Shown here: one piece after another, positions 597-14,494 of the stretch
Position numbering within the stretch: position 1 is the first letter of the stretch
Layout of the letters: every line of letters starts with the position of its first letter
Source: Malacoraja senta
Taxonomy: Eukaryota
Reading direction: 5' to 3'
DNA length: 64,000 nt
Assembly (NCBI GenBank): GCA_038087875.1
Contig: JAXLNO010006101.1
Span: forward strand, 1-64,000
Position numbers and translations under genes: made by a program
Notes under the pieces: model-generated
Database searches by the model: none
What the model saw: the letters and a program-made list of their open reading frames with translations, nothing else
What the model was told of the DNA's origin: nothing

Positions 597-1285
597 CCTG
601 CTGCATTAAAGGGCATGCATGCATCACTGGTTGCATTAAAGGGAATGCATGCATCATTGGCTGCATTAAATGGAATGCATGCATCACTGGCTGCATTAAA
701 GGGAATGCATGCATCATTGGCTGCATTAAATGGAATGCATGCATCACTGGCTGCATTAAAGGGAATGCATGCATCACTGGCTGGATTAAAGGGAATGCAT
801 GCATCACTGGCTGCATTAAAGGGAATGCATGCATCACTGGCTGCATTGAAGGGAATGCATGCTTCACTGGCTGCATTAAAGGGAATGCATGCGTCACTGG
901 CTGCATTAAAGGGAATGCATGCGTCACTGGCTGCATTAAAGGGAATGCATGCGTCACTGGCTGCATTAAAGGGAATGCATGTGCCACTGGCGGCATTAAA
1001 GGGAATGAATGCGTCACTGGCTGCATTAAAGGGAATGCATGCGTCACTGGCTGCATTAAAGGGAGTGCATGCGTCACTGACTGCATTAAAGGCAATGCAT
1101 GCATCACTGGCTGCATTAAAGGGAATGCATGCGTCACTGGCTGCATTAAGGAGAAGGCATGCATCACAGGGAATGCATGCATCACTGGCTGCATTAAAGG
1201 GAATGCATGCATCACTGGCTGCATTAAAGGGAATGCATGCATCACTGGCTGCATTAAAGGGAATGCATGCATCACTGGCTGCATT
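597..1285. repeat. 30 bp minisatellite, about 23 copies
   Basis: Unit CTGCATTAAAGGGAATGCATGCATCACTGG; it explains the 10-aa periodic ORFs (ALKGMHASLA / MQPVMHAFPL). Confidence 0.97.
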
Positions 1286-1436
1286 CCTGCCTCCCGCTGC
1301 ATGGCAGTGCTTTTATCCTTACCTGCTCTTCACCAAAGATTATATAGCAGAGCAAGATGCGCCACTCAGCGAAAAAAGGGTAGTATGCCATGGGTGGTTG
1401 TCGACGCCATTTTACTGGCGTGCCTCGACTACAGTC

Positions 1437-4400
1437 ATGGCATCTACATCTAAATCTTCATCTCACTGCTCTGCTATCAATTGCTCTAATCGTCAATGTA
1501 AATGACCCGACCTGTCATTCTTTAGGTTCCCCGATCGATCGAAAACACCGCGGAGTCAGAATCGATCTCTCTCTCTCCCCCTTCTCTCGATCTCTCTCTC
1601 CCCTCTCTTCTCTCGATCTCCCTCCCTCTCTCCCTCTCCGTTCTTTCCCTCCCTCCCTTTCCTCTCTCCCTCCCTTCCCTCTGTGTGAGAGTTGGCAGCC
1701 CTGCTATGCCTTAGGTCCAAAAGAGGATAGAAAGAAAATACTTAATGGTCTTTGTAAGAAGTTTTTAATATTCTCTTCTACATTTAAGGTAAATTGACAT
1801 ATTAGAGGCAAAATGCATCTTCAATATACAGGTCTCTCCACACAACTGAAAACAATTGCACTTAAGTGATACATCACCCATTCTGCAGGCATGTAGTTAA
1901 TCCTAAATGATATGTTCTGTAATTTCAGATGTCAACAGTGGGTCCAGAATACTCGTCGACAAGATCTCCTGAACTGAACTCCGGAGTACTTGTCAGCCAA
2001 CTGTTGTCTTTGTTCTTTACACTTTGAACTTGACCAGTTTTCCAACAAGCAGACCAAGAACAGGCTAAATTGGAATGCAGTTCCAACGCTCTTTGACATT
2101 CCTAACCCGCCAAAACGTCTGTCTTCCCAACGCAGGTTACTCAAGAGGAAGAATGAGAACCTCCCATCCTCACCAACGCCTTTAAAACAGCAAAGAGGCA
2201 AGTAATTTTCTCCTTTTTAAAATAAAATATATTCTCTCACTTTGGCTAAATATTAAAAAGTTATATCCAAACTGATATAATTGCCAATGGTCAATATGTA
2301 ATGGCATGTATGGTACTTTTATTTTCATTTGTGAAATGTTCACAAAACTATAATCACACGTAAGACTACACAGTGTGGGCTGATGGAATGCGTACTAGTA
2401 TTTAATTAAAGTAAGAACATCCATTTAAAGCTTCCTCAAGCATAATTCATACAACATTTAAATTGATTTAACTTTTCTTCTGGTAGATTGAAATTGGTGC
2501 ATCACATCTATTTTTAATTATAATTATTAGTAGATGCTGATTTATTTACATGTATGTGCTTCATCTTTTTCATTAATATGCTTGACATTTCTTTTTCCCT
2601 TTCTCATTTTTTTTGGTCTTGGCAGTGTCACACAACATACTGGCCGAACATTCTTACTGCTCAGCTGCAGACAAAATTCATCGTAAAGAACCCAGCAATG
2701 TCTCTACAACTCCTGAAAAACCTGATCTTCAATCCACACCAAATGTGAATGACAGCAGAGCTCTGAAGAAGGAAAGACAGCGTACTTTCCCCCTCAAAAA
2801 AAGAGTGCAACAGATTAAATTATCAATGAAAAAGAATACTACAGAAATTAAGACAATTAGTGACTTGATCAGAGGGGCTGGTGAATTTTTACAAGAACCA
2901 GCGCTGTCTTTCTTTGCGTCGCAGTTGCGTAATGCGGCTGGACGTAGAAGTGCAAGAGGAAGACGATGGAGTTATTCAGACAAGGTGGTTGCCTTGTCCC
3001 TCTACCACCAGAGTCCCCGAGCATATCAGTTCTGCCAGTGCATTTTCACACTTCCATCAATCTCATCACTACGTAGGTGGTTGAGCAATATTGAAGTGAG
3101 GCCTGGGTTTCCCCCTAAGATCTTTGAACTTTTGAAAGACAGGGTTGCGGGGATGTCAGAGAGGGATACATTATGTGTAGTCTCCTTTGACGAAATGAGT
3201 TTACGTGCAAGCCTCTCTTACAATATTACTGAAGATTCAGTGGAGGTTTTTGAGGACTTTGGATCCCTAGGGAAGACATCAAGGCTGCCAACCATGCTCT
3301 AGTTTTCATGGTTGGAGGCTTGATGGGGAAATGGAAGCAACCTGTAGGTTACTTTCTTTCACGGGACTGCACAATGGCTGACAAACTACAAACATTACTC
3401 AATGAATGTTTACAGAAGGTTAAGGCTATTGGACTACAGCCCAAGGCCGTTGTTTGTGACCAAGGCCCAAGCAATATTCGACTGTACTCCAACTTGGGTG
3501 TGACAGAAGACCATCCTTTCTTCGTCCACGGGGGAACCAATATCTATTGCATGCATGACCCACCCCACTTGTTGAAAAACACTCGCTCAAATTTGGAGAA
3601 ATATGTTTTTGAGGTCAAGGGAGAGGATGGCAGAAAAAAACATATCAAATGGGCGCATATTTACACATTTTATGAGCATGATTCACAGTTGCCCATTAGA
3701 AAGGCCCATAAATTAACCAGAGTACAACAGATTAAATTATCAATGAAAAAGAATACTACAGAGGCCATTTTGTTTTAAACAGCTTCTCTAAAATGAGAGT
3801 CAACAAGGCTGCGCAGGTGCTTAGCCATTCGGTAGCAGCAGGCGTCTACACCTATGCAGCTCTTGGAAAGTTACCTGGGGAGGCTGTTTATACGGCAGAG
3901 TTCATTGAAATGGTTGATGGACTGTTTGACTCATTTAACAGCAGGTTTTTCAAGGACCCCAAAATGTTAAGGAGGCCTATTTCTGAAAAGTCTGTGCATA
4001 AGTCATTCTTTGAATCATGCTTGACTGTACTCCGAAGCTTGACAGTGCTTGGAGCTAAAAATGTGTTGTTTGTCAAGGGATGGCGCCTTGCAATTTCTTG
4101 CATTTCACAGCTGTGGCAGCACATAAAGGAAAGCACAGACGCCCGTTTTATGTTTACATCTCGGATCAATCAGGATGTTGTAGAGAATTTGTTCTCCACT
4201 ATTCGGCGAAAGGGCGGATTCAGAGAAAATCCATCAGCGAAGGAGTTTCGATGTGCTTTCCGGATGGTTATGGTGGCTGAACTGATAAAACCATCTGTGA
4301 GTTCAAACTGTTCCCCCGACTCAGACAGATTTATCTTAACATTGCAAACACTAACAAAAAACAGAGTCAAGAAACCATCTCCATCTATCTCCCATACCAA

Positions 4401-4917
4401 TAAAACAAAACAGCACAATGCAGTCTGCAGCATTTCACTAGATCTCCCTGAAGAGAATACACTAGCTTACATCGCAGGACACATCTGTCACAAAATCATC
4501 TCTTCACATGAACTGTCCTCAAAATGCCACACATGCAGAGAAGTTCTATTACGAACGGATGCCACTTTAGTAGATCCTGCACTCATATTCATCCATCACA
4601 AAGCATACGACACATCAACGTCTGACTTTGGCTCATTGATGGTGCCTTCGGAATACTTTCTTGGGTTCTGTGAAGTGTGCGAGAAAGTGTTCCGCACAGA
4701 ATTTGATGATGTTAAGATGACCAGGGATAACATTTCCCATCTAATAAACACAGCAATACATAACACACAGCAATACAAAGACATGAACTTGTGCTGCAAT
4801 AGAGTCAAGATTAGAATTGTAGCAATCTTTGTGAGTATCCACATGCACTATGGACTCAAATTCAAGAATAGAAAAATGCATAACATGACTGTTAAAAGGA
4901 GATGTAAAAAACTTTAA
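1437..4917 (+). pseudogene. Spliced THAP-domain P-element transposase (THAP9-like family), inactivated
   Basis: Exon 1 from ATG 1437: MASTSKSSSHCSAINCSNRQCK*PDLSFFRFP. Exon 2 at 1929-2197: CQQWVQNTRRQDLLN*TPEYLSANCCLCSLHFE…AVPTLF (THAP C2CH). Candidate GC-AG intron 2198-2625. Exon 3 from 2626 carries RRWS…LSLY, SFDEMS, VCDQG, HDPPHLLKNTR, KMRVNKAAQ and NQDVVENLF, ending at stop 4915-4917. Lesions: two TGA codons, a frameshift near 3280, a 41 bp insertion at 3722-3762, and a disrupted exon 1 donor. Confidence 0.9.
1565..1685. repeat. CT-rich low-complexity tract within an insertion disrupting THAP exon 1
   Basis: Pyrimidine-rich run starting shortly after the FFRFP codons. Confidence 0.8.
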
Positions 4918-4984
4918 AAAGTGGAACATAAGTAAAGTGCATAATTTTCAAACATTATTTATTTGAAGTAATCCTATTGTTCAA

Positions 4985-5990
4985 GTTCGTTCAATTGAGT
5001 TTATTGTCATGTGTTCCTGATTGTACAATGAAATTCTTGCTTTGCTTCAGCACAACAGAACATAGTAGGCATTGACTACAAAACAGATCAGTGTGTCCAC
5101 ATACAATTATATAAATTTATACACACATGAATAAATAAACTGATAAAGTGCAAATAACATATAATGGGCTATTAATGTTCAGAGTTTTGTCCGAGCCAAG
5201 TTTAATAGCCTGATGGCTGTGGGGAAGTAGCTAATCCTGAACCTGGTCGTTGCAGTCTTCAGGCTCCTGTACCTTCTACCTGAAGGTAGTAGGGAGATGA
5301 GTGTGTGGCCAGGATGGTGTGGGTCCTTGATGATAGTGCCAGCCTTTTTGAGGCAGCAACTGCGATAGATCCCCTCGATGGAAGGGAGGTCAGAGCCGAT
5401 GATGGACTGGGCAGTGTTTACTACTTTTTGTAATCTTTTTGCTGGTGTTGAGTGCCAAGTTATTGTGCTGGCACCATATGGACAGTTGCTCGACTTCTCT
5501 TCTATACTCTGACTCATCCCCATCAGTGATACGTCCCACAACAGTGGTGTTGTCAGCAAACTTGATGATGGAGTTCGCACTATGTCCAGCTATGCAGTCA
5601 TGAGTATAGATTGAGTACAGCAGGGGGCTGAGCACGCAGTCTTGAGGTGCACCCGTGCAGAGTATTATCGAGTCTTGACACATTTCCACCAATACGAACA
5701 GACTGGTCTGAGAATGAGGAAGTCGAGGATCCAATTGCAGAGACTCAGTTCTGCGAGTTTGGTAACCAGCTTGGAGGGGATGATTGTATTAAATGCCGAG
5801 GTATAATCAATGAATAACAGCCTGACATATGAGTTTTTGTTGTCCAAGTTTCCCAGAGAAGAGTGGAGGGCCAGCGAGATCGCATCCACCGTTGATCTGT
5901 TGTGGCGGTAAGAGAACTGCAGTGGGTCCAGGTTTTTGTCGAGGTAGGAGTTGAAAATGTGTTGGCTCCTTGCAATGTGTTTGCCAAATT
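4985..5990 (-). mobile_element. Rex1/Babar-type non-LTR retrotransposon fragment
   Basis: [23 protein letters not shown]…[29 protein letters not shown] and the C-terminal HPGHTLISLLPSGRRYRSLKT…FPTAIRLLN are typical Rex1 RT motifs. Frameshifted. Confidence 0.85.
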
Positions 5991-6074
5991 TCTTGACTTT
6001 TAAAGACTCTTCAGAAAATGTGTTGGCTCCTTGCAAAGTGCTTGCCAAATTGTCTTGACTTTTAAAGACTCTTC

Positions 6075-6311
6075 AGAAAATGCCACCCAGCTTTGTGTCA
6101 TCCTCAAACTTGCTAGTGTTGCTCCTAATTCCCTCTTCCAAATCATTAATATATATGGTAAACAGTTGCGGCCCCAACACCGAGCCTTGCGGCACTCCAC
6201 TCGCCGCTGCCTGCCATTCTGAAAAGGACCCGTTCACTCCTACTCTTTGCTTCCGGTCTGCCAACCAATTTTCTATCCATGTCAACACCCTACCCCCAAT
6301 ACCGTGTGCTC
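6075..6311 (-). mobile_element. CR1 RT fragment
   Basis: WIENWLADRKQRVGVNG…SGVPQGSVLGPQLFTIYINDLEEG…KFEDDTKLGG. Confidence 0.9.
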
Positions 6312-6329
6312 CAGATGGACCTGAGAAAA

Positions 6330-6667
6330 ACAATCGGCAATGTAGGCAACCCGACTTGTCTTTCTTCAGGTTCCCCATTAAGGAGGAAAGGTAAGAAAAC
6401 ATTTATTACTTCTGTCGCATATTGAAATTTTAATTTAGCCTGTTCAATCTCTCACTGTAGTTAGATCATTGATCTCAGATAGTCGAGTCCTCATGGCAAC
6501 ATCCTTTTAAAAATCTTCACCTAAAGAGCATTTTCTTTCTGCCTCTCTGTTATTTAATGCAGAATAAGAACATATTGACTGCATGATATTTTCTTTAATT
6601 TCAGATGTCGACAGGACATGATCTACACCGAACTGCGGAGTATTTGTCAAATAACTGCCGTCTTATG
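6330..6667 (+). pseudogene. Second, diverged THAP/P-element relic (exon 1 end, intron, truncated exon 2)
   Basis: NRQCRQPDLSFFRFPIKEER followed by donor AG|GTAAGA at 6391. Acceptor TTTCAG|A at 6605 is followed by RQD…RTAEYLSNNCRL, paralogous to 1437-1531 and 1929-2010. Confidence 0.8.
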
Positions 6668-6989
6668 TACATTGTGTGAAATTGTGATTTGTTAACTGCA
6701 CAAAACAATGCAAATGGCAATTATTTATTATTGTATCTTCGTTGGACGTTTTGGTCTTTGGTGTAAGCAGGGGTGGGGCTATCATTGTGTTACATACGTT
6801 GAATTGTACATTACTTTCACTGGTTGGCTGATATGCTTAACACTGCAACCCTGTATATCTCGCGCACAGAATAATGTGAATTATGTAAATCTTACCATGC
6901 ATGTCAGAAATAAAGTGAGAAGTATGTTAATGGATCTCTATTATGAATTATTTAAAATTGAGTGGGTTAGTGCAATATCGGTTCCAGCC

Positions 6990-7437
6990 GTCAGTGACTG
7001 CACTGCCAGCCCACCAGCCGTATGTGACAGATCTGCCAACCCACGAGCCGTGAGTAAGTGAACTGCCAGCCCACCAGCTGTAAGTGACTGAACTGCCAGG
7101 CCAATAATCCATTCAGTCCACCCTCTCCCCCTTCTCTCACAGAGTCTGTCACCTGTTTTGGGCAGAATTTCTGGCAGTTTCTCAGCTGCCAGCCTGCCAG
7201 GTCTGAGTGACTGTACTGCCAGGCCTCAGTGACTGAACTGCCAGCCCTAGAATCCATTCGACCCACAATGTCCATACTAGCCCTCTGGAAAAATGTCCCT
7301 TCGGCGCACAACACCCATACTAGCGCAACAGAACCCCCCCCCCCCACTGGCCAGCAATATTGGAATTGGTGGAGAGGTGGAATATTGCATTGGGTGACCA
7401 GCCCTCCCGTGTGATGCTGGGACCCAACTTAGTCTAG
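6990..7437 (+). mobile_element. Non-autonomous Helitron, 3' part (hairpin half-deleted)
   Basis: 7375-7437 matches the 3' end of the Helitron at 24817-25427 (GGAATATTGC…CCAGCCCTCCCGTGTGA…GGGACCCAAC…TTAGTCTAG|T). The 3' arm of the hairpin is missing. Internal GTGACTGAACTGCCAGCCC repeats; 5' boundary not defined. Confidence 0.65.
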
Positions 7438-7717
7438 TTATTGTATATAAGTTGGAAATGTTGTCCTTTGTTTGAAATATGTTGAATTTGACATCAATTT
7501 TATTGATTAGCTGATATGCAAAACACTGCAACCCTGTATATGTCGCGCACAAAATGATGTAAATAAAAAGTGTTTTCCTTGTTTATGAAGTTCAATTTAG
7601 AATTATTTGAAATTGTGGGGGTTGGTGCAAAATACTGCTGACCCACGAATGTATCGTTATGAGACATTCAAGTTTTTAAAATCCATGTCTCGAAAAAAGC
7701 AAGAAGGTCCCCATATT

Positions 7718-8490
7718 GGGGCGGCCCGGTCGGGGGGAGAAGCGACGCCCAAGTCGGGGCGGCCCGGTCGGGGGGAGAAGCGACGCCCAAGTTGGGGCAG
7801 CTCGGCCAGAGGGAGAAGCGACGCCCAAGTTGGGGCGGCCCGGTCGGGGGGAGAAGCGACGCCCAAGTCGGGGCGGCCCGGTCGGGGGGAGAAGCGACGC
7901 CCAAGTTGGGGCGGCCCGGTCGGGGGGAGAAGCGACGCCCAAGTCGGGGCGGCCCGGTCGGGGGGAGAAGCGACGCCCAAGTTGGGGCAGCCTGGTCGGG
8001 GGGAGAAGCGACGCCCAAGTTGGGGCAGCTCGGCCAGAGGGAGAAGCGACGCCCAAGTTGGGGCGGCCCGGTCGGGGGGAGAAGCGACGCCCAAGTCGGG
8101 GCGGCCCGGTCGGGGGGAGAAGCGACGCCCAAGTTGGGGCGGCCCGGTCGGGGGGAGAAGCGACGCCCAAGTCGGGGCGGCCCGGTCGGGGGGAGAAGCG
8201 ACGCCCAAGTTGGGGCGGCCCGGTCGGGGGGAGAAGCGACGCCCAAGTCGGGGCAGCCCGGTCGGGGGGAGAAGCGACGCCCAAGTCGGGGCGGCCCGGT
8301 CGGGGGGAGAAGCGACGCCCAAGTTGGGGCAGCCCGGTCGGGGGGAGAAGCGACGCCCAAGTCGGGGCAGCTCGGCCAGAGGGAGAAGCGACGCCCAAGT
8401 CGGGGCGGCCCGGTCGGGGGGAGTAGCGACGCCCAAGTCGGGGCGGCCCGGTCGGGGGGAGAAGCGACGCCCAGGTTGGGGCGGCCCGGC
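7718..8490. repeat. GC-rich 38 bp minisatellite, about 20 copies
   Basis: Unit GGGGCGGCCCGGTCGGGGGGAGAAGCGACGCCCAAGT(C/T); it produces the six overlapping periodic ORFs. Confidence 0.97.
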
Positions 8491-8875
8491 CCGGGGAAGA
8501 GGGTGGCTGGGACGGTGTTCTGCCGGTGGTGGCTTGAGTCCGGGGTTCGGCCGCGGGCCAGCGGCTACGTCTGCAGGACTGGTGGGCGGCAGCTTCGACC
8601 ACCCCGGGCCGCGGTGTTTGAGCCGCGGGACTGTTATAACATCGCCCGGGGGGTATCGCCTCAGCGCAGAGGGAGAAGAGGAGGGAAGAGACTGCAGACC
8701 TAAGACTTTTGCCTCCATCACAGTGAGGAGATGCTGGGTGGACTCACTGTGGTGGATGTTAATATGTGTTTATTGTTGTTTTTATTGTATTATATGTATG
8801 ACTGCTGCAATTTCGTCCAGACTTCGGTCTGAATGACAATAAAGGCATATCTATCTATCTATATCTATCTATATT
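8490..8875 (+). mobile_element. Unclassified retroposon-like interspersed repeat (GC-rich body, AATAAA and ATCT tail)
   Basis: Tail GCCTCCATCACAGTGAGGAG…TCACTGTGGTGGATGTT…TGACAATAAA matches reverse-strand copies at about 54080, 57160 and 63370. Confidence 0.6.
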
Positions 8876-9107
8876 ATTTGACCAACTTATCGACTGAATT
8901 TAAATATGTAAGGATGTATGCACTACATTGTGTTACGCTAATATAGAATGAAAGAATGGAAAAATATTTCGACATTGTGTTCATGTCATGGATATTCTAT
9001 TCACAATATTAGGATTTCATATATATTTTATATATATGTGTGTGTGTATATATATGTGTATACATACTAATATGTATGTGTATATATATGTATATACACA
9101 CTTATTG

Positions 9108-9238
9108 NNNNNNNNNNNNNNNNNNNNNNNNNNNNNNNNNNNNNNNNNNNNNNNNNNNNNNNNNNNNNNNNNNNNNNNNNNNNNNNNNNNNNNNNNNNNN
9201 NNNNNNNNNNNNNNNNNNNNNNNNNNNNNNNNNNNNNN
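9108..9238. other. Assembly gap (N run) next to a TA/TG microsatellite
   Basis: 131 N characters. Confidence 1.
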
Positions 9239-9686
9239 AAGGTTGCTAAACAAATTAGAGGAAATCTGAAGAAAGAAACTAGAGAAATATGTCATCAAGT
9301 CACTTTTATTTATATAGCACATTTAAAAAAACAAGCGACCACGTTTGTTCGCGCTGGACGCATGCAATTGCATGCTGGTGGGACAGACCCTTAACTTGCC
9401 TCTCACACACAAACACACATTCATATAAATATATATATAAGTTACATTTAATTGTGTGCACAGTGTGTGTTAAAGCAATACAAGGGAAGCTGCACAATAC
9501 AATGCAAGGGAAACTACGCAAAGGTGGCGGCTAGGGAGGAAAGATGGGAGGGAAATGGGGGAACGGGGAAAACATTTACAATAAAATTAACTAAAATATG
9601 TGAGGTGATAGATGCGCTATATCAAACACTGTTCCCTACAACACTAATTACACTGGTTACACCAAGGATGATAGAGCAGATTACAT

Positions 9687-9862
9687 CAAAGATACTAGAG
9701 GCGCTCCGCTCCGCTATATAATCTTTGGATCAAAGCAGCGGGAGGCAAACTGGAAGTCGCGTTTTGCATTAGAAAATGGCGGCCGTGACGTTCCATTGCG
9801 TACTACACGTCAGTCCATTGGATTTCGGAGGAGTGGTCTATCTTGCTCCTCTAGTATCTTTG
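9687..9862. mobile_element. P-family-related MITE
   Basis: TIR CAAAGATACTAGAGG (9687) and CCTCTAGTATCTTTG (ends 9862). Its reverse strand starts CAAAGATACTAGAGGAGCAAGATAGACCACTC, similar to the P left end CAAAGATTATATAGCAGAGCAAGATGCGCCACTC. No TSD recognised. Confidence 0.6.
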
Positions 9863-9864
9863 GG

Positions 9865-10340
9865 GACAATAAGGGGCTCCTGTACCCGATTGGCTGAGCT
9901 GCGTCAGGTGACGGTGACTCATCCCCAGTATAAATAGAAGAGTTCCCAGAATCCTCTCTTTTTCGACGACGACCCTGCCTCGTGAGGTTGTGCTGGTGTG
10001 AGCTGTGAATGCCTGGGCCACATGGCACTGAACTTCGTGTAATTTCCACATTACGTAGTACCAAATATTGAATTGGGCTGTCCTTAGACGTTATCGGTCT
10101 TTTGTTTCAGGGATAGCTTTCTTTTAGGCAGGTTTAGAGCCTCGGGTTCGACGGTCCATCGTGTGGCTGGCCTGAGCAATTTTAAGTTGTTTGTTAATTC
10201 ATTCATATCGTTGTCTGGGTTGTTTAAATCAGGTTGGAGTTTTGGTGTGTTATTAAATAATTAAACTATTTTTTAACTTAAACCTGGCTTTTGACTGTGT
10301 TACGCGGCTCTGGATTGCCTGCTTTCGGGGAGTCGTAACA
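9865..10340 (+). mobile_element. Solo-LTR-like segment (3' part)
   Basis: Inverted CCAAT (GATTGG 9888), AP-1-like TGACTCA 9915, TATAAAT 9929, AT-rich polyA-like region, and terminus …GTCGTAACA. 5' end and TSD not identified. Confidence 0.5.
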
Positions 10341-10419
10341 CTCAACCAGAGGCAGAAAGTTTGTGCGGAACATATCAGATAAGGGTATTGTGATAAAAAC
10401 GCCGAGATAGCGAAACCCA

Positions 10420-12720
10420 TCCTCTGCCCATTTGAATGAGGTTAACTGGTGTTAGGCTAACTGGTCTATAATTCCCTGTTTTCTCCCTCCCGCCTTTCTT
10501 AAAAAGTGGCATAACATTAGCTACCCTCCAATCCACAGGAACTGATCCTGAGTCTATAGAACATTGGAAAATTATCACCAATGCATCCACGATTTCTCGA
10601 GTCACTTGCTTAAGTACCCTGGTATGCAGACCATCAGGCCATGGGGATTTATCAGCCTTCAGTCCCATCAGTCTACCCAACATCATTACCTGCCTAATGT
10701 GGATTTCCTTCATAGAAACATAGAAAATAGATGCAGGAGGAGGCCATTCGGCCCTTCGAGCCAGCACCGCCATTCATTGTGATCATGACTGATTGTCCCC
10801 TATCAATAACCCATGCCTGCCTTCTCCCCATATCCCTTGAATCCACTAGCCCTTAGAGCTCTATCTAACTCTCTCTTAAATCCATCCAGTGACTTGGCCT
10901 CCACTGCCCTCTGTGGCAGGGAATTACATAAATTCACAACTCTCTGGGTGAAAACGTTTTTTCTCACCTCAGTCTTAAATGACCTCCCCTTTATTCTAAG
11001 ACTGTGGCCCATGGTTCTGGACTCGCCCAACATTGGGAACATTTTTTCTGCATCTAACTTGTCCAGTCCTTTTATAATTTTATATGTTTCTATAAGATCC
11101 CCCTCATCCTTCTAAACTCCAGTGAATACAATCCAAGTATTTTCAATCTTTCCTCATATGACAGTCCTGCCATCCCAGGGATCAATCTCGTGAACCTACG
11201 CTGCACTGCTTCAATCACTATGATGTCCTTCCTCAAATTAGGAGACCAAAACTGTACACAATACTCCAGATGTGGTCTCACCAGAGCCCTATACAACTGC
11301 AGAAGAACCTCTTTACTCCTATACTGACATCCTCTTGTTATGAAGGCCAACATTCCATTATCTTTCTTCACAACCTGCTGGACCTGTAAGCCAACTTTCA
11401 GTGACCGGTGTACAAGGACACCCAGGTCTCGCTGCACCTCCGCACTTACCTAACCTAACCCCATTGAGATAATAATCTGCCCCCTTGTTTTTGCCGCCAA
11501 AGTGGATAACCTCACATTTATCTATATTATACTGCATCTGCCACGCATCTGCCCACTCACTCAACCTGTCCAGGTCACCCTGCAACCTCCTAACATCCTC
11601 TTCACAGCTCACACTGCCACTTCCGTTCCTCTGTCACCCCAGATCCTCTGGCCACTACTATATCAGGAAGATTGTTTGTGTCCTCCTTAGTGAAGACGGA
11701 TCCAAAGTACCTGTTCAACCCATCTGCCATTTCCTTGTTCCCCATAATAAATTCACCTTTTTCAGTCTTCAAGGGTCCAACTTTGGTCTTAACTAATTTT
11801 ATCCTCTTTACATACTTAAAGAAACTTTTTCTATCCTGCTTTATATTCTTGGCTAGCTTACCTTTGTACCTCATCTTTTCTTCCCGTATTGTCTTTTGTT
11901 ATCTTCTGTTGCTCTTTAAACATTACCCAATCATCTTGCTTCCCGCTCATCTTTGCTACGTTGCACTTCTTCTCTTTTATTTTTATACTGTCCCTGATGT
12001 CCCTTGTCAGCCACGGTCGCCCCTTTCTCCCCTTGGAATCTTTCTTCCTCCTAGGAATGAACAGATCCTGCACCTTCTGTATTATTCCTAGAAATACCTG
12101 CCATTTGTGTTCCACTGTCATCCCTGTTAATGTATCTTTCCAGTCAACCTTGGCCAGCTCCTCCCTCATGGCTCCCTAGTCCCCTTTATTCAACTGTAAC
12201 ACCGACACCTCCGATCTACCCTTCTCCCTCTCCAACCGTAGATTAAACCTGACCATATTATGGTCACTACCTCCTAATGGCTCATTAACCTCAAGTTCCT
12301 TTATCAGATCAGGTTCATTACATAACACTAAATCCAGAATTATCTTCTCCCTGGTAGGCTCCAATACAAGCTGCTCTAAGAATCCATCACAAAGGCACTC
12401 TACAAAGTCCCTTTCTTGTGGTCCAGTACCAACCTGACTTTCCCAGTCTACTTGCATGTTGAAATCTCCCATAACAACCACAGCATTACCTTTGCTACAT
12501 GACAATTTTAACTCCTGATTCAACTTGCACCCTATGTCCAGGCTACTGTTTGGGGGCCTGTAGATAAGTCCCACTAGGGTCTTTTTACCCTTACACTTCC
12601 TTAGTTCTATCCATACTGACTCCACATCTCCTGTTTCAATGTCACCCCCTTGCAAGGGACTGAATTTCATTCCTCACCAACAGAGCTACCCCACCCCTTC
12701 TGCCCACCTGTCTGTCTTTT
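10420..12720 (-). mobile_element. CR1 LINE fragments (APE endonuclease to 3' tail, internally deleted, plus an extra RT-upstream piece)
   Basis: Minus-strand ORFs: ESVWIEL…YRPPNS…GDFN…LDLVL…SDHN (APE), DKSPWPDGLH…WRVANVMPLFKKG, LVRPHLEYCVQFWSP, FTQRVVNLCNSLP; tail …CCTATTTTCTATGTTTCTATG. Confidence 0.92.
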
Positions 12721-12784
12721 CGTTAGGAGATATACTTGAATATTCAGTTCCCAGCCCTGGCCCTCTTGCAGCCATGTCTCTGTT

Positions 12785-12885
12785 TCTGTGTAGGATAGTG
12801 TTAGTGTGTGGTGATCGCTGGTCGGCGTGGACTCGGTGGGCTGAAGGAACTGTTTCCACGCTGTATCTCTAAACTAAACTAAAAT
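12785..12885 (+). mobile_element. HE1/V-SINE-type SINE 3' half
   Basis: GGATAGTGTTAGTGTG…GATCGCTGGTCGGCGTGGACTCGGTGGGCTGAAGG…CTGTATCTCTAAACTAAACTAAA. Confidence 0.75.
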
Positions 12886-14494
12886 GGAATCCCATCCCGA
12901 GTAGGCAGAACCTTCCCATTGAAACACTTACTAGTTACTTGAATCCCTAACCCAATCACAAAGTATCCCATTACATTGTTTCAACAGAAAGTTCTAGCAG
13001 GGACTCCGTTGACATAGTTTACATAGGTATAGAAACATTTCCCCAAACAATCTGAACAAGGCTTCACAGTTTAACAAATCACAAGATAACAGAACAACCA
13101 CTCTGCAACATAATTAACAGTATTTACAACTCCACCTTATCTGACCAATCCTGACCATGCACCTCTGAGCTCTTCTGCAAAGTCATCAACATTTTAACAA
13201 AGAAATGGACATCTGGACATCACCTTATCCTTGACTTCCATCTCTGGTCCAGACTCTTTGAAGCTGTAACTTGCAGCTTGAAACTTTTCACAGAAAGAGG
13301 CCAAGCAGGCCTTGCAAATGCAAAGATCCTCCATTTTGTGACATCTCTAATTTGGCCAATAATAATAGAACAAGGAACTGCAGACCAGACTATACTAACA
13401 GAACAATAAAACGGACGTGGATGAGATTAAACTCACCCGGAGGGTGGTTCCAATCTGGGACACTCTGCCTGTGGAGATGGTGGAGGCTTGGACTTTCCCT
13501 GCAGCTGCAGGAGATGCTCCACTGCAGGAGATGCTCCACTGCAGCAGCAGCGAGAGCTCCACTGCGGCAGTGGCTGCTCCACAGCAGGAGGGGCTTCAAT
13601 GCAGGAACCTGCTCCACTGCAGCATCTGCTCCCCTGCAATATCTGCTCCACTGCAACATCATGTCCATTGTAACGGCAGCAGCTCCATTGTAATGCCTTA
13701 TTTTTAATTCCACGTGATGAAATGAGCACACCCAAGAGACTTGTGATTAGTCCCTGATTATTGGCAGCAGGATATGTACAGTTTTGCTTCTGATGACTAT
13801 TTCCTCCTGGTAAGGTTCCTCACCAATATTCAAAAATTCCCATCAGTGATCTCAAATTGGACTAACTTTACAATCAATACCAAAGCTTGATGTCATTCAG
13901 AAGATGGTGACCATGGACAACACAAACCCACAGACATTGGGGCCCAGTTATGCTTTTTAATGTTGTACTAGTCACAGTCCTGAAATCAGAGATTGGACAA
14001 AGGTCAATGTTCCCATTGATGAAGAGGTGGATTGTCCTGGTTGTTCATTATTCAATCCATTTACTCAACCATGGCACAAAGTGTCACTGTCAGTACAGGC
14101 AGCAAGAATGAGCCATTACTTTAAACCTGGAGGAATAGAAAGAAGGATTCTGATCTATTTCACTTACCACACAGATGTGTGAAACTGAAAGATTGGTTAT
14201 TGCGATTTCTGACCTGGAAATAGACACATACTCATCCGTCATATTCTTCATGCTGGTTGATTATTCTTTAACTCTGAAAAATAATTTTTAGGTTGTTTGC
14301 TGTCTTTGTCAAGTAGACATGATCAATTGAATAATAGCATGAATACTCTGGAGGAAATAGTAATAACGATAACATTGCAAAGTGATGTTTCCACAGATAT
14401 TTTGCACGGGTAAGTTCAATGAAGATAAATACCTGAAGTTGGCCATAACAGATGATGAGCATGTTTTATTTTTCACAGGATTAAATGTACCATA

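Follow-up and report, generated by a model that had tools for sequence, protein, structure and literature searches.

To our knowledge, few vertebrate P-type transposons outside zebrafish have been described with their ends, target-site duplication (TSD) and transposase gene together. In this work we examine such an element in a 64,000-nucleotide stretch of genomic DNA from the skate Malacoraja senta (contig JAXLNO010006101.1; the whole stretch is called the window, and positions are counted from its first letter), which a first-pass annotation had read as a P element. Among described systems, zebrafish Pdre2/zfTHAP9 is a vertebrate P-like family with terminal inverted repeats (TIRs), 8-bp TSDs and one full-length copy alongside many internally deleted ones (PMC10983969); within the P superfamily, long-TIR elements such as Galileo carry long foldback-like inverted ends with repeated motifs (PMC3688188, PMC4168063); and a survey of 23 genomes saw P only in platyfish and coelacanth (PMC4350176). 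We conclude, with a probability of about 0.8, that window positions 1334-9862 are a single inactive full-length (autonomous-type) copy from a skate family of P-superfamily cut-and-paste transposons. The copy is ordinary in kind; with its relatives it joins family ends, an 8-bp TSD and a spliced transposase gene, and the locus and those relatives show such ends and THAP exons on a P-type transposase in a cartilaginous fish. The copies compared are the window copy, L001, L002-L004, L007 and L008 (Amblyraja radiata), L009 (Priapulus caudatus KQ715490.1) and L010-L012 (Leucoraja erinacea).

Exon pieces were searched apart in Pfam and aligned separately to the Drosophila P transposase (PDB 6p5a), and the two comparisons agree with the earlier call of a P-type transposon bearing a THAP-plus-transposase gene. 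Exon 2 matches the Pfam THAP domain (PF05485, E=3.7e-6), with the C2CH pattern divided between exons 1 and 2. In exon 3, the Tnp_P_element helix-turn-helix (HTH) domain and the first half of RNaseH_N (2628-3299) are followed by the second half of RNaseH_N (3308-3775) and then by the GTP-binding insertion domain (GBD) and RNaseH_C (3793-4914), so that PF21787, PF21788 and PF21789 are all matched, an RNase H-like domain split by a GTP-binding insert; relatives match THAP9_C as well. The three pieces align with 6p5a, at a protein identity of only about 25-30% over the aligned pieces, and the motifs that had been singled out as candidate catalytic sequences (DEMS, CDQG and QDVVENLF) are indeed present and well placed: FDEMS supplies the D that aligns with D230, CDQG the D at D303 and QDVVENLF the E at E531, and in the Drosophila enzyme these three residues form the catalytic triad (PMC7776569).

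The proposed three-exon structure with a 2197/2626 junction finds independent backing in relatives. NCBI models P0083, P0079, P0075 and P0092 from A. radiata and L. erinacea join ...KER/C... and ...KQQR/V..., the second of which is the window's 2197/2626, and the Priapulus copy is without intron 2 exactly there, its exons 2 and 3 abutting with the spacing to the next conserved codons unchanged. The donor of intron 2 is GT in L007 and GC in the window and L008. Introns are found at both corresponding places in L002-L004, which form a sister P-like lineage with 61-67% nucleotide identity to the window. Members of this lineage keep the three-exon layout and also have TGA at the exon-1 site; they come from three different metagenome samples, are 99.6-99.8% identical to one another and presumably represent the DNA of one host species.

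The gene belongs to a multi-copy family. Family matches are present in A. radiata, which has several diverged copies, in L. erinacea, and in ENA and Logan assemblies, and they include internally deleted non-autonomous derivatives. The latter are the three L. erinacea copies, each about 6.2 kb long and without most of exon 3; they lie on separate scaffolds, are 98% identical to one another and carry the same 220-aa annotated product, and L011 alone among them keeps both ends and the TSD. Window blocks 1332-1535, 1766-2526, 2563-2773, 6081-6894, 7419-7717, 9392-9497 and 9713-9862 are collinear with all three. We regard the family as P-superfamily (THAP9-like) DNA transposons in skates, not as domesticated THAP9. 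The chance that the locus is instead a THAP9-type host gene or its pseudogene seems to us negligible, even though NCBI calls relatives 'THAP domain-containing protein 1-like' or '2-like', because there are many diverged copies per skate genome, the family has TIRs and an 8-bp TSD, and every copy read is either broken (window, L001, L002, L007, L008) or internally deleted (L009-L012). The window neighbours are, moreover, a PRDM9 relic and a major histocompatibility complex (MHC) class I-like gene, which is not a THAP9 neighbourhood. Where a domesticated THAP9 would be a single copy with an intact open reading frame (ORF) and neither TIR nor TSD, the family here is multi-copy with ends, and the window ORF is broken.

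In NCBI annotation the L007, L008 and L010-L012 copies are labelled as THAP1-like, THAP2-like or '52 kDa repressor'-like genes, and one model at L007 merges a MORC-like gene with the element's THAP exons; transposon copies thus appear in skate genome annotations as host genes of the THAP1-like or THAP2-like kind. There is no support for orthology between the window and the L008 locus, whose flanks match in interspersed repeats only. A word search with a piece of THAP exon 2 gave no matches, and of two metagenome pattern scans the first returned none and the second two GC-rich bacterial contigs, which were set aside as chance matches.

The extent of the element differs from that first proposed. 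The first-pass annotation had placed 19-bp inverted termini at 1334 and 9727, and a 20-mer, CAAAGATTATATAGC[A/G]GAGC, does occur at 1334-1353 (+) and 9708-9727 (-), matching at 19/20 and found nowhere else in the window (chance expectation 0.01). A second pair of similar 18-mers, at 9687 (+) and 9862 (-), and an identity of 85/111 (77%) between 1333-1470 and the reverse complement of 9728-9863 point further outward. The layout is clearest in L011, which has a perfect 34-nt TIR starting CAAAGAT, arms matching at 102/114 and the 8-mer CTTCAGAC on both sides, so that inverted ends are found both there and, at 77% over 111 nt, in the window. At the 3' end of L011 the conserved 3' region is followed by a short double-end palindrome and then by the 5' subterminal region in inverted copy, which ends in ...ATCTTTG; this arrangement recurs position for position in L012, L007 and the window. 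Because the clean, TSD-flanked L011 and the shared 3' layout place the family end there, sequence comparison puts the true 3' terminus at 9862, 135 nt outside 9727. The copies' flanks diverge right at CAAAGAT, and bases outside this motif were rejected as part of the terminus on the ground that they differ between copies up to it.

A nearly intact, recently mobile element with its ends at 1334 and 9727 could draw on the 19/20 match and on coding lesions that are few and partly CpG decay. We nevertheless consider it very improbable: 9708-9727 is internal, pairing with 9687-9704 in a palindrome found internally, at the homologous place, in L007, L011 and L012; beyond it the element runs on to a family-type terminus; inverted similarity extends outward past both 20-mers; the flanks of this pair show no duplication (CTCTTCAC vs GATCAAAG); and the closest relative found, at 93.8% identity, falls short of near-identity. 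The earlier inverted termini are thus real as a sequence match but not as a pair of element ends, and the right boundary moves. The features of the copy from 1334 to 9862, together with its left flank, are collected in Table 1.

Table 1. Features of the window copy and its left flank
Feature	Position	Strand	Remarks
Left flank resembling, inverted, the inner junction of the right arm (9728-9755)	1283..1317	+	13-nt exact match and gapped alignment
Left arm: 5' terminus (CAAAGAT...), promoter-like subterminal region, start of exon 1	1334..1470	+	Homologous to 5' ends of L007, L008, L010-L012
Exon 1 (THAP start)	1437..1535	+	TGA at 1503-1505; donor lost downstream
Intron 1 remnant, CT-rich low-complexity tract	1536..1928	+	
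Exon 2 (rest of THAP domain)	1929..2197	+	Pfam THAP; TGA at 1975-1977
Intron 2, GC-AG, donor AG/GCAAGT	2198..2625	+	
Exon 3 (HTH, RNase H-like DDE with GTP-binding insert, C-terminal region)	2626..4917	+	Pfam and 6p5a alignment
Repeat resembling a short interspersed nuclear element (SINE-like) and long interspersed nuclear element (LINE) reverse-transcriptase fragments, in the 3' untranslated region	4991..6080	-	Pfam RVT_1; repeated elsewhere in the window
Second LINE reverse-transcriptase fragment	6081..6311	-	RVT_1; runs on into the following block in L010-L012
Internal partial duplicate of THAP exon 1, intron 1 and exon 2 (earlier called a paralog)	6312..6665	+	
Family 3' untranslated region units, split by other repeats (6785-6986, 7431-7717)	6785..7717	+	Collinear with L001 3' untranslated region and L010-L012
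38-bp GC-rich satellite, about 20.6 copies	7718..8500	.	
Assembly gap (N), non-coding DNA	9108..9238	.	4.2 kb downstream of stop codon; no reading frame crosses
Conserved 3' subterminal region	9392..9686	+	Matches L007 15607-15735 and L010-L012
41-bp double-end palindrome; right half earlier taken for the right TIR	9687..9727	.	Homologous position in L007, L011
Right arm, inverted copy of 5' terminus and subterminal region	9728..9862	-	Terminal 35 nt nearly identical to L008 5' end

Within the arms, every copy retains two subterminal boxes, GCCATTTT / AAAATGGCG and a CCAAT-like one (1400-1425 and 9773-9791 in the window), a possible YY1-type promoter element. Just outside the right terminus, at 9885-9935, lies a further promoter-like block (an inverted CCAAT, TGACG-like motifs and TATAAATAG) that faces rightwards.

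The coding part of the copy is decayed. At the two TGA codons L007 and L009 have CGA, while L008 has CGC at the first site and CGA at the second; the internal THAP duplicate has CAA at the exon-1 site and, as had been noticed at the outset, CGA (6629-6631) at the exon-2 site. Since the other copies keep an arginine codon, mostly CGA, both stops are best read from the sequences as CGA>TGA CpG decay, in keeping with the original suggestion. Relative to L008, exon 3 also contains two frameshifts, a 1-nt deletion near 3285 and a 41-nt insertion at 3718-3758 that is a copy of about 2806-2847 in the same exon; the TAG at 3300 arises downstream of the deletion and was rejected as a point stop. The exon-1 donor, GAA AG/GT in L007, L008, L009 and L002, is missing. 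With these five disabling lesions (two stops, two frameshifts and the lost donor) the window copy cannot make transposase. The earlier phrase 'only a few lesions' can stand, roughly, for no more than the coding part. No intact transposase gene was present in any copy read (window, L001, L002, L007-L012).

Exon 3 of the window is 93.8% identical over 2251 nt to L008, the nearest relative found, and 81-87% identical to other copies; no copy more than 94% identical to it was found among those compared. This distance, the five lesions and the absence of a TSD together indicate, on sequence grounds, that the window copy is not young, and the recent mobility once ascribed to it does not hold. For the family such mobility is plausible, because the three 98%-identical L. 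erinacea copies include one with a perfect TIR and TSD, and it is only for these non-autonomous copies that it finds support. The fraction of 31-mers of 1300-4990 seen in sequencing run X1 (organism A) is 0.67 and in organisms B to H 0.23-0.28, which would fit related copies in other species.

Several observations weigh against one simple insertion from 1334 to 9862. The TSD looked for at the window, 8 bp (range 7-9 bp) in the P superfamily, is found at neither pair of ends, the flanks of 1334/9862 (CTCTTCAC vs GGGACAAT) matching at 1/8, although the relative L011 has one of 8 bp; L007's own ends give a TSD match of 4/8 only. From 1334 onward, the first 20 nt follow the palindrome half and not the family consensus, and 1334-1535 is only 75-76% identical to relatives, whereas exons 2-3 reach 94-97% against L008 and the rest of the copy 85-96%. 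The assembly gap at 9108-9238 separates the right end from the rest of the copy, and the join there is judged by block order alone. The family copies, finally, were located in genomes other than the window's source. The disparity between 1334-1535 and the rest identifies the copy as a mosaic, whose two ends may stem from different insertions. Considering the palindrome-type first 20 nt, the low identity of 1334-1535, the likeness of the left flank to the inner arm junction (its alignment score was reached by 4/500 shuffles) and the missing TSD, we suggest that the 5' end was probably rebuilt, by recombination or by template switching during repair, with another copy.

The same features could be explained if the interval joined at least two separate copies, one giving the 5' end and perhaps the gene and another the 3' half, whether by ectopic recombination, by nested insertion or through wrong scaffolding across the gap. 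The absent TSD, the mosaic identity, the left flank resembling an inverted inner arm junction, and the assembly gap speak for such a join. We consider it rather unlikely all the same, because order and orientation of all major blocks fit the layout in the three L. erinacea copies and L007, which a random join is not expected to reproduce; as an indirect test of the gap itself, the blocks on either side of it keep their order and strand in the three L. erinacea copies. A single copy with a rebuilt 5' end is the reading that we retain. A 30-bp satellite at 600-1285, with long spurious ORFs on both strands, adjoins the element's left flank.

The long 3' region also has counterparts in relatives. 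Positions 6081-6894 form one contiguous block of 0.8 kb in the three L. erinacea copies, 85% identical to the window and followed there by 7419-7717, 9392-9497 and the right arm, and the junction at 4991 is common to the window and L008. The contiguity of this block and the shared junction show, by comparison of the copies, that the LINE fragment and the THAP duplicate are inherited family passengers, already in the ancestral elements and copied along with them; the alternative of locus-specific debris or a second inserted copy for 6312-6665 and the LINE pieces was rejected on the same contiguity. The 3' untranslated region of L001 is collinear with 7431-7718, its alignment ending where the 38-bp satellite starts. 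A duplicated start of the 3' untranslated region was not significant when tested (25/300 shuffles).

The palindrome inside the right end has counterparts in L007 (15735-15774), L008 (10480-10618), L011 (17505-17572) and L009 (9786-9845). These structures consist of two element ends over 17-60 bp, flanked by 8-bp direct repeats, sometimes in tandem and clustered inside other family copies. The flanking repeats match at 8/8 in L007 (GGCATAAC) and L011 (CTTTGGAT), at 8/8 (GGTGCAAT) and 7/8 (GTTGGAAT/GTCGGAAT) in L008, at 7/8 in L009 and at 5/8 in the window, compared with 2-3/8 for control matches elsewhere. The window palindrome most likely remains from a nested copy, and double-end palindromes in general may be excision footprints or fully deleted nested copies. 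Drosophila P makes a long staggered cleavage of 17 nt and depends on GTP. That the relics in the skate family keep about 15-20 nt of each end hints at a similarly long staggered cut, and if they are true footprints, a vertebrate P family would make the cut known from Drosophila P.

The family is not confined to skates. The Priapulus copy (9786-13801 of KQ715490.1) is 82-90% identical to skate copies at the nucleotide level, its exon 3 being 86.2% identical to the window and 89.5% to L007, and lies closer to skate copies than certain skate paralogs lie to one another. A similar CAAAGAT end is present, and the copy is cut off after about 620 nt of exon 3. These features suggest either horizontal transfer or a fault in the assembly; that the copy came from skate contamination is unlikely, given that no other skate repeat was found in the 23.6 kb of Priapulus scaffold around the copy. 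Beyond this copy, two Diadema sea-urchin proteins (P0085, P0086; 52-59% identical) and a protein of the anchovy Coilia grayii (P0045; 67% identical in a short stretch) fall within this transposase lineage, and because two sea urchins and an anchovy hold members of it, the distribution of the transposase family across marine animals is patchy. We hold it as a tentative view, somewhat more doubtful than not, that the family was recently mobile in skates and crossed between skates and P. caudatus and, separately, that the palindromes are fossil excision footprints. Should the Priapulus copy hold up, it would be a marine case of a transposon passing between a vertebrate and an invertebrate phylum.

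Taken together, the copies outline what an intact member would look like. It would have a TIR of about 34 nt starting CAAAGAT and extending imperfectly into arms of about 135 nt, which would carry the promoter-like region; a three-exon gene predicted to encode a THAP-HTH-RNase H(DDE)/GTP-binding transposase; and a long 3' region with old passengers, namely the LINE fragment, the partial THAP-exon duplicate and tandem repeats. If such a member behaves like Drosophila P and zebrafish Pdre2, its transposase would use the THAP finger to recognise subterminal sites and would cleave the DNA at the repeats, and reinsertion would create an 8-bp TSD of the kind seen in L011.

The features that the skate family shares with Drosophila P are the THAP and HTH domains, an RNase H-like DDE domain with a GTP-binding domain inserted in it, the equivalents of D230, D303 and E531, and a gene that is spliced. 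TIRs of about 31-34 nt and TSDs of 8 bp are common to both, as are non-autonomous derivatives with internal deletions. The differences lie in the terminal sequence, the intron positions, the inverted arms of about 135 nt, of which the 5' subterminal region is a part, and the vertebrate host. Zebrafish Pdre2/zfTHAP9 has, by description, the same general make-up, the skate TIR being 34 nt with long arms. With Galileo the skate family shares a P-type transposase and long foldback-like inverted ends carrying repeated motifs, to which the THAP domain may bind where they contain CAAAGAT, although the TIRs of Galileo are far longer than the skate arms. Human and chicken THAP9 share homologous transposase domains with the skate family. 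In contrast to these single-copy host genes without TIRs or TSD, the skate family is multi-copy and mobile, and the window holds one of its broken copies.

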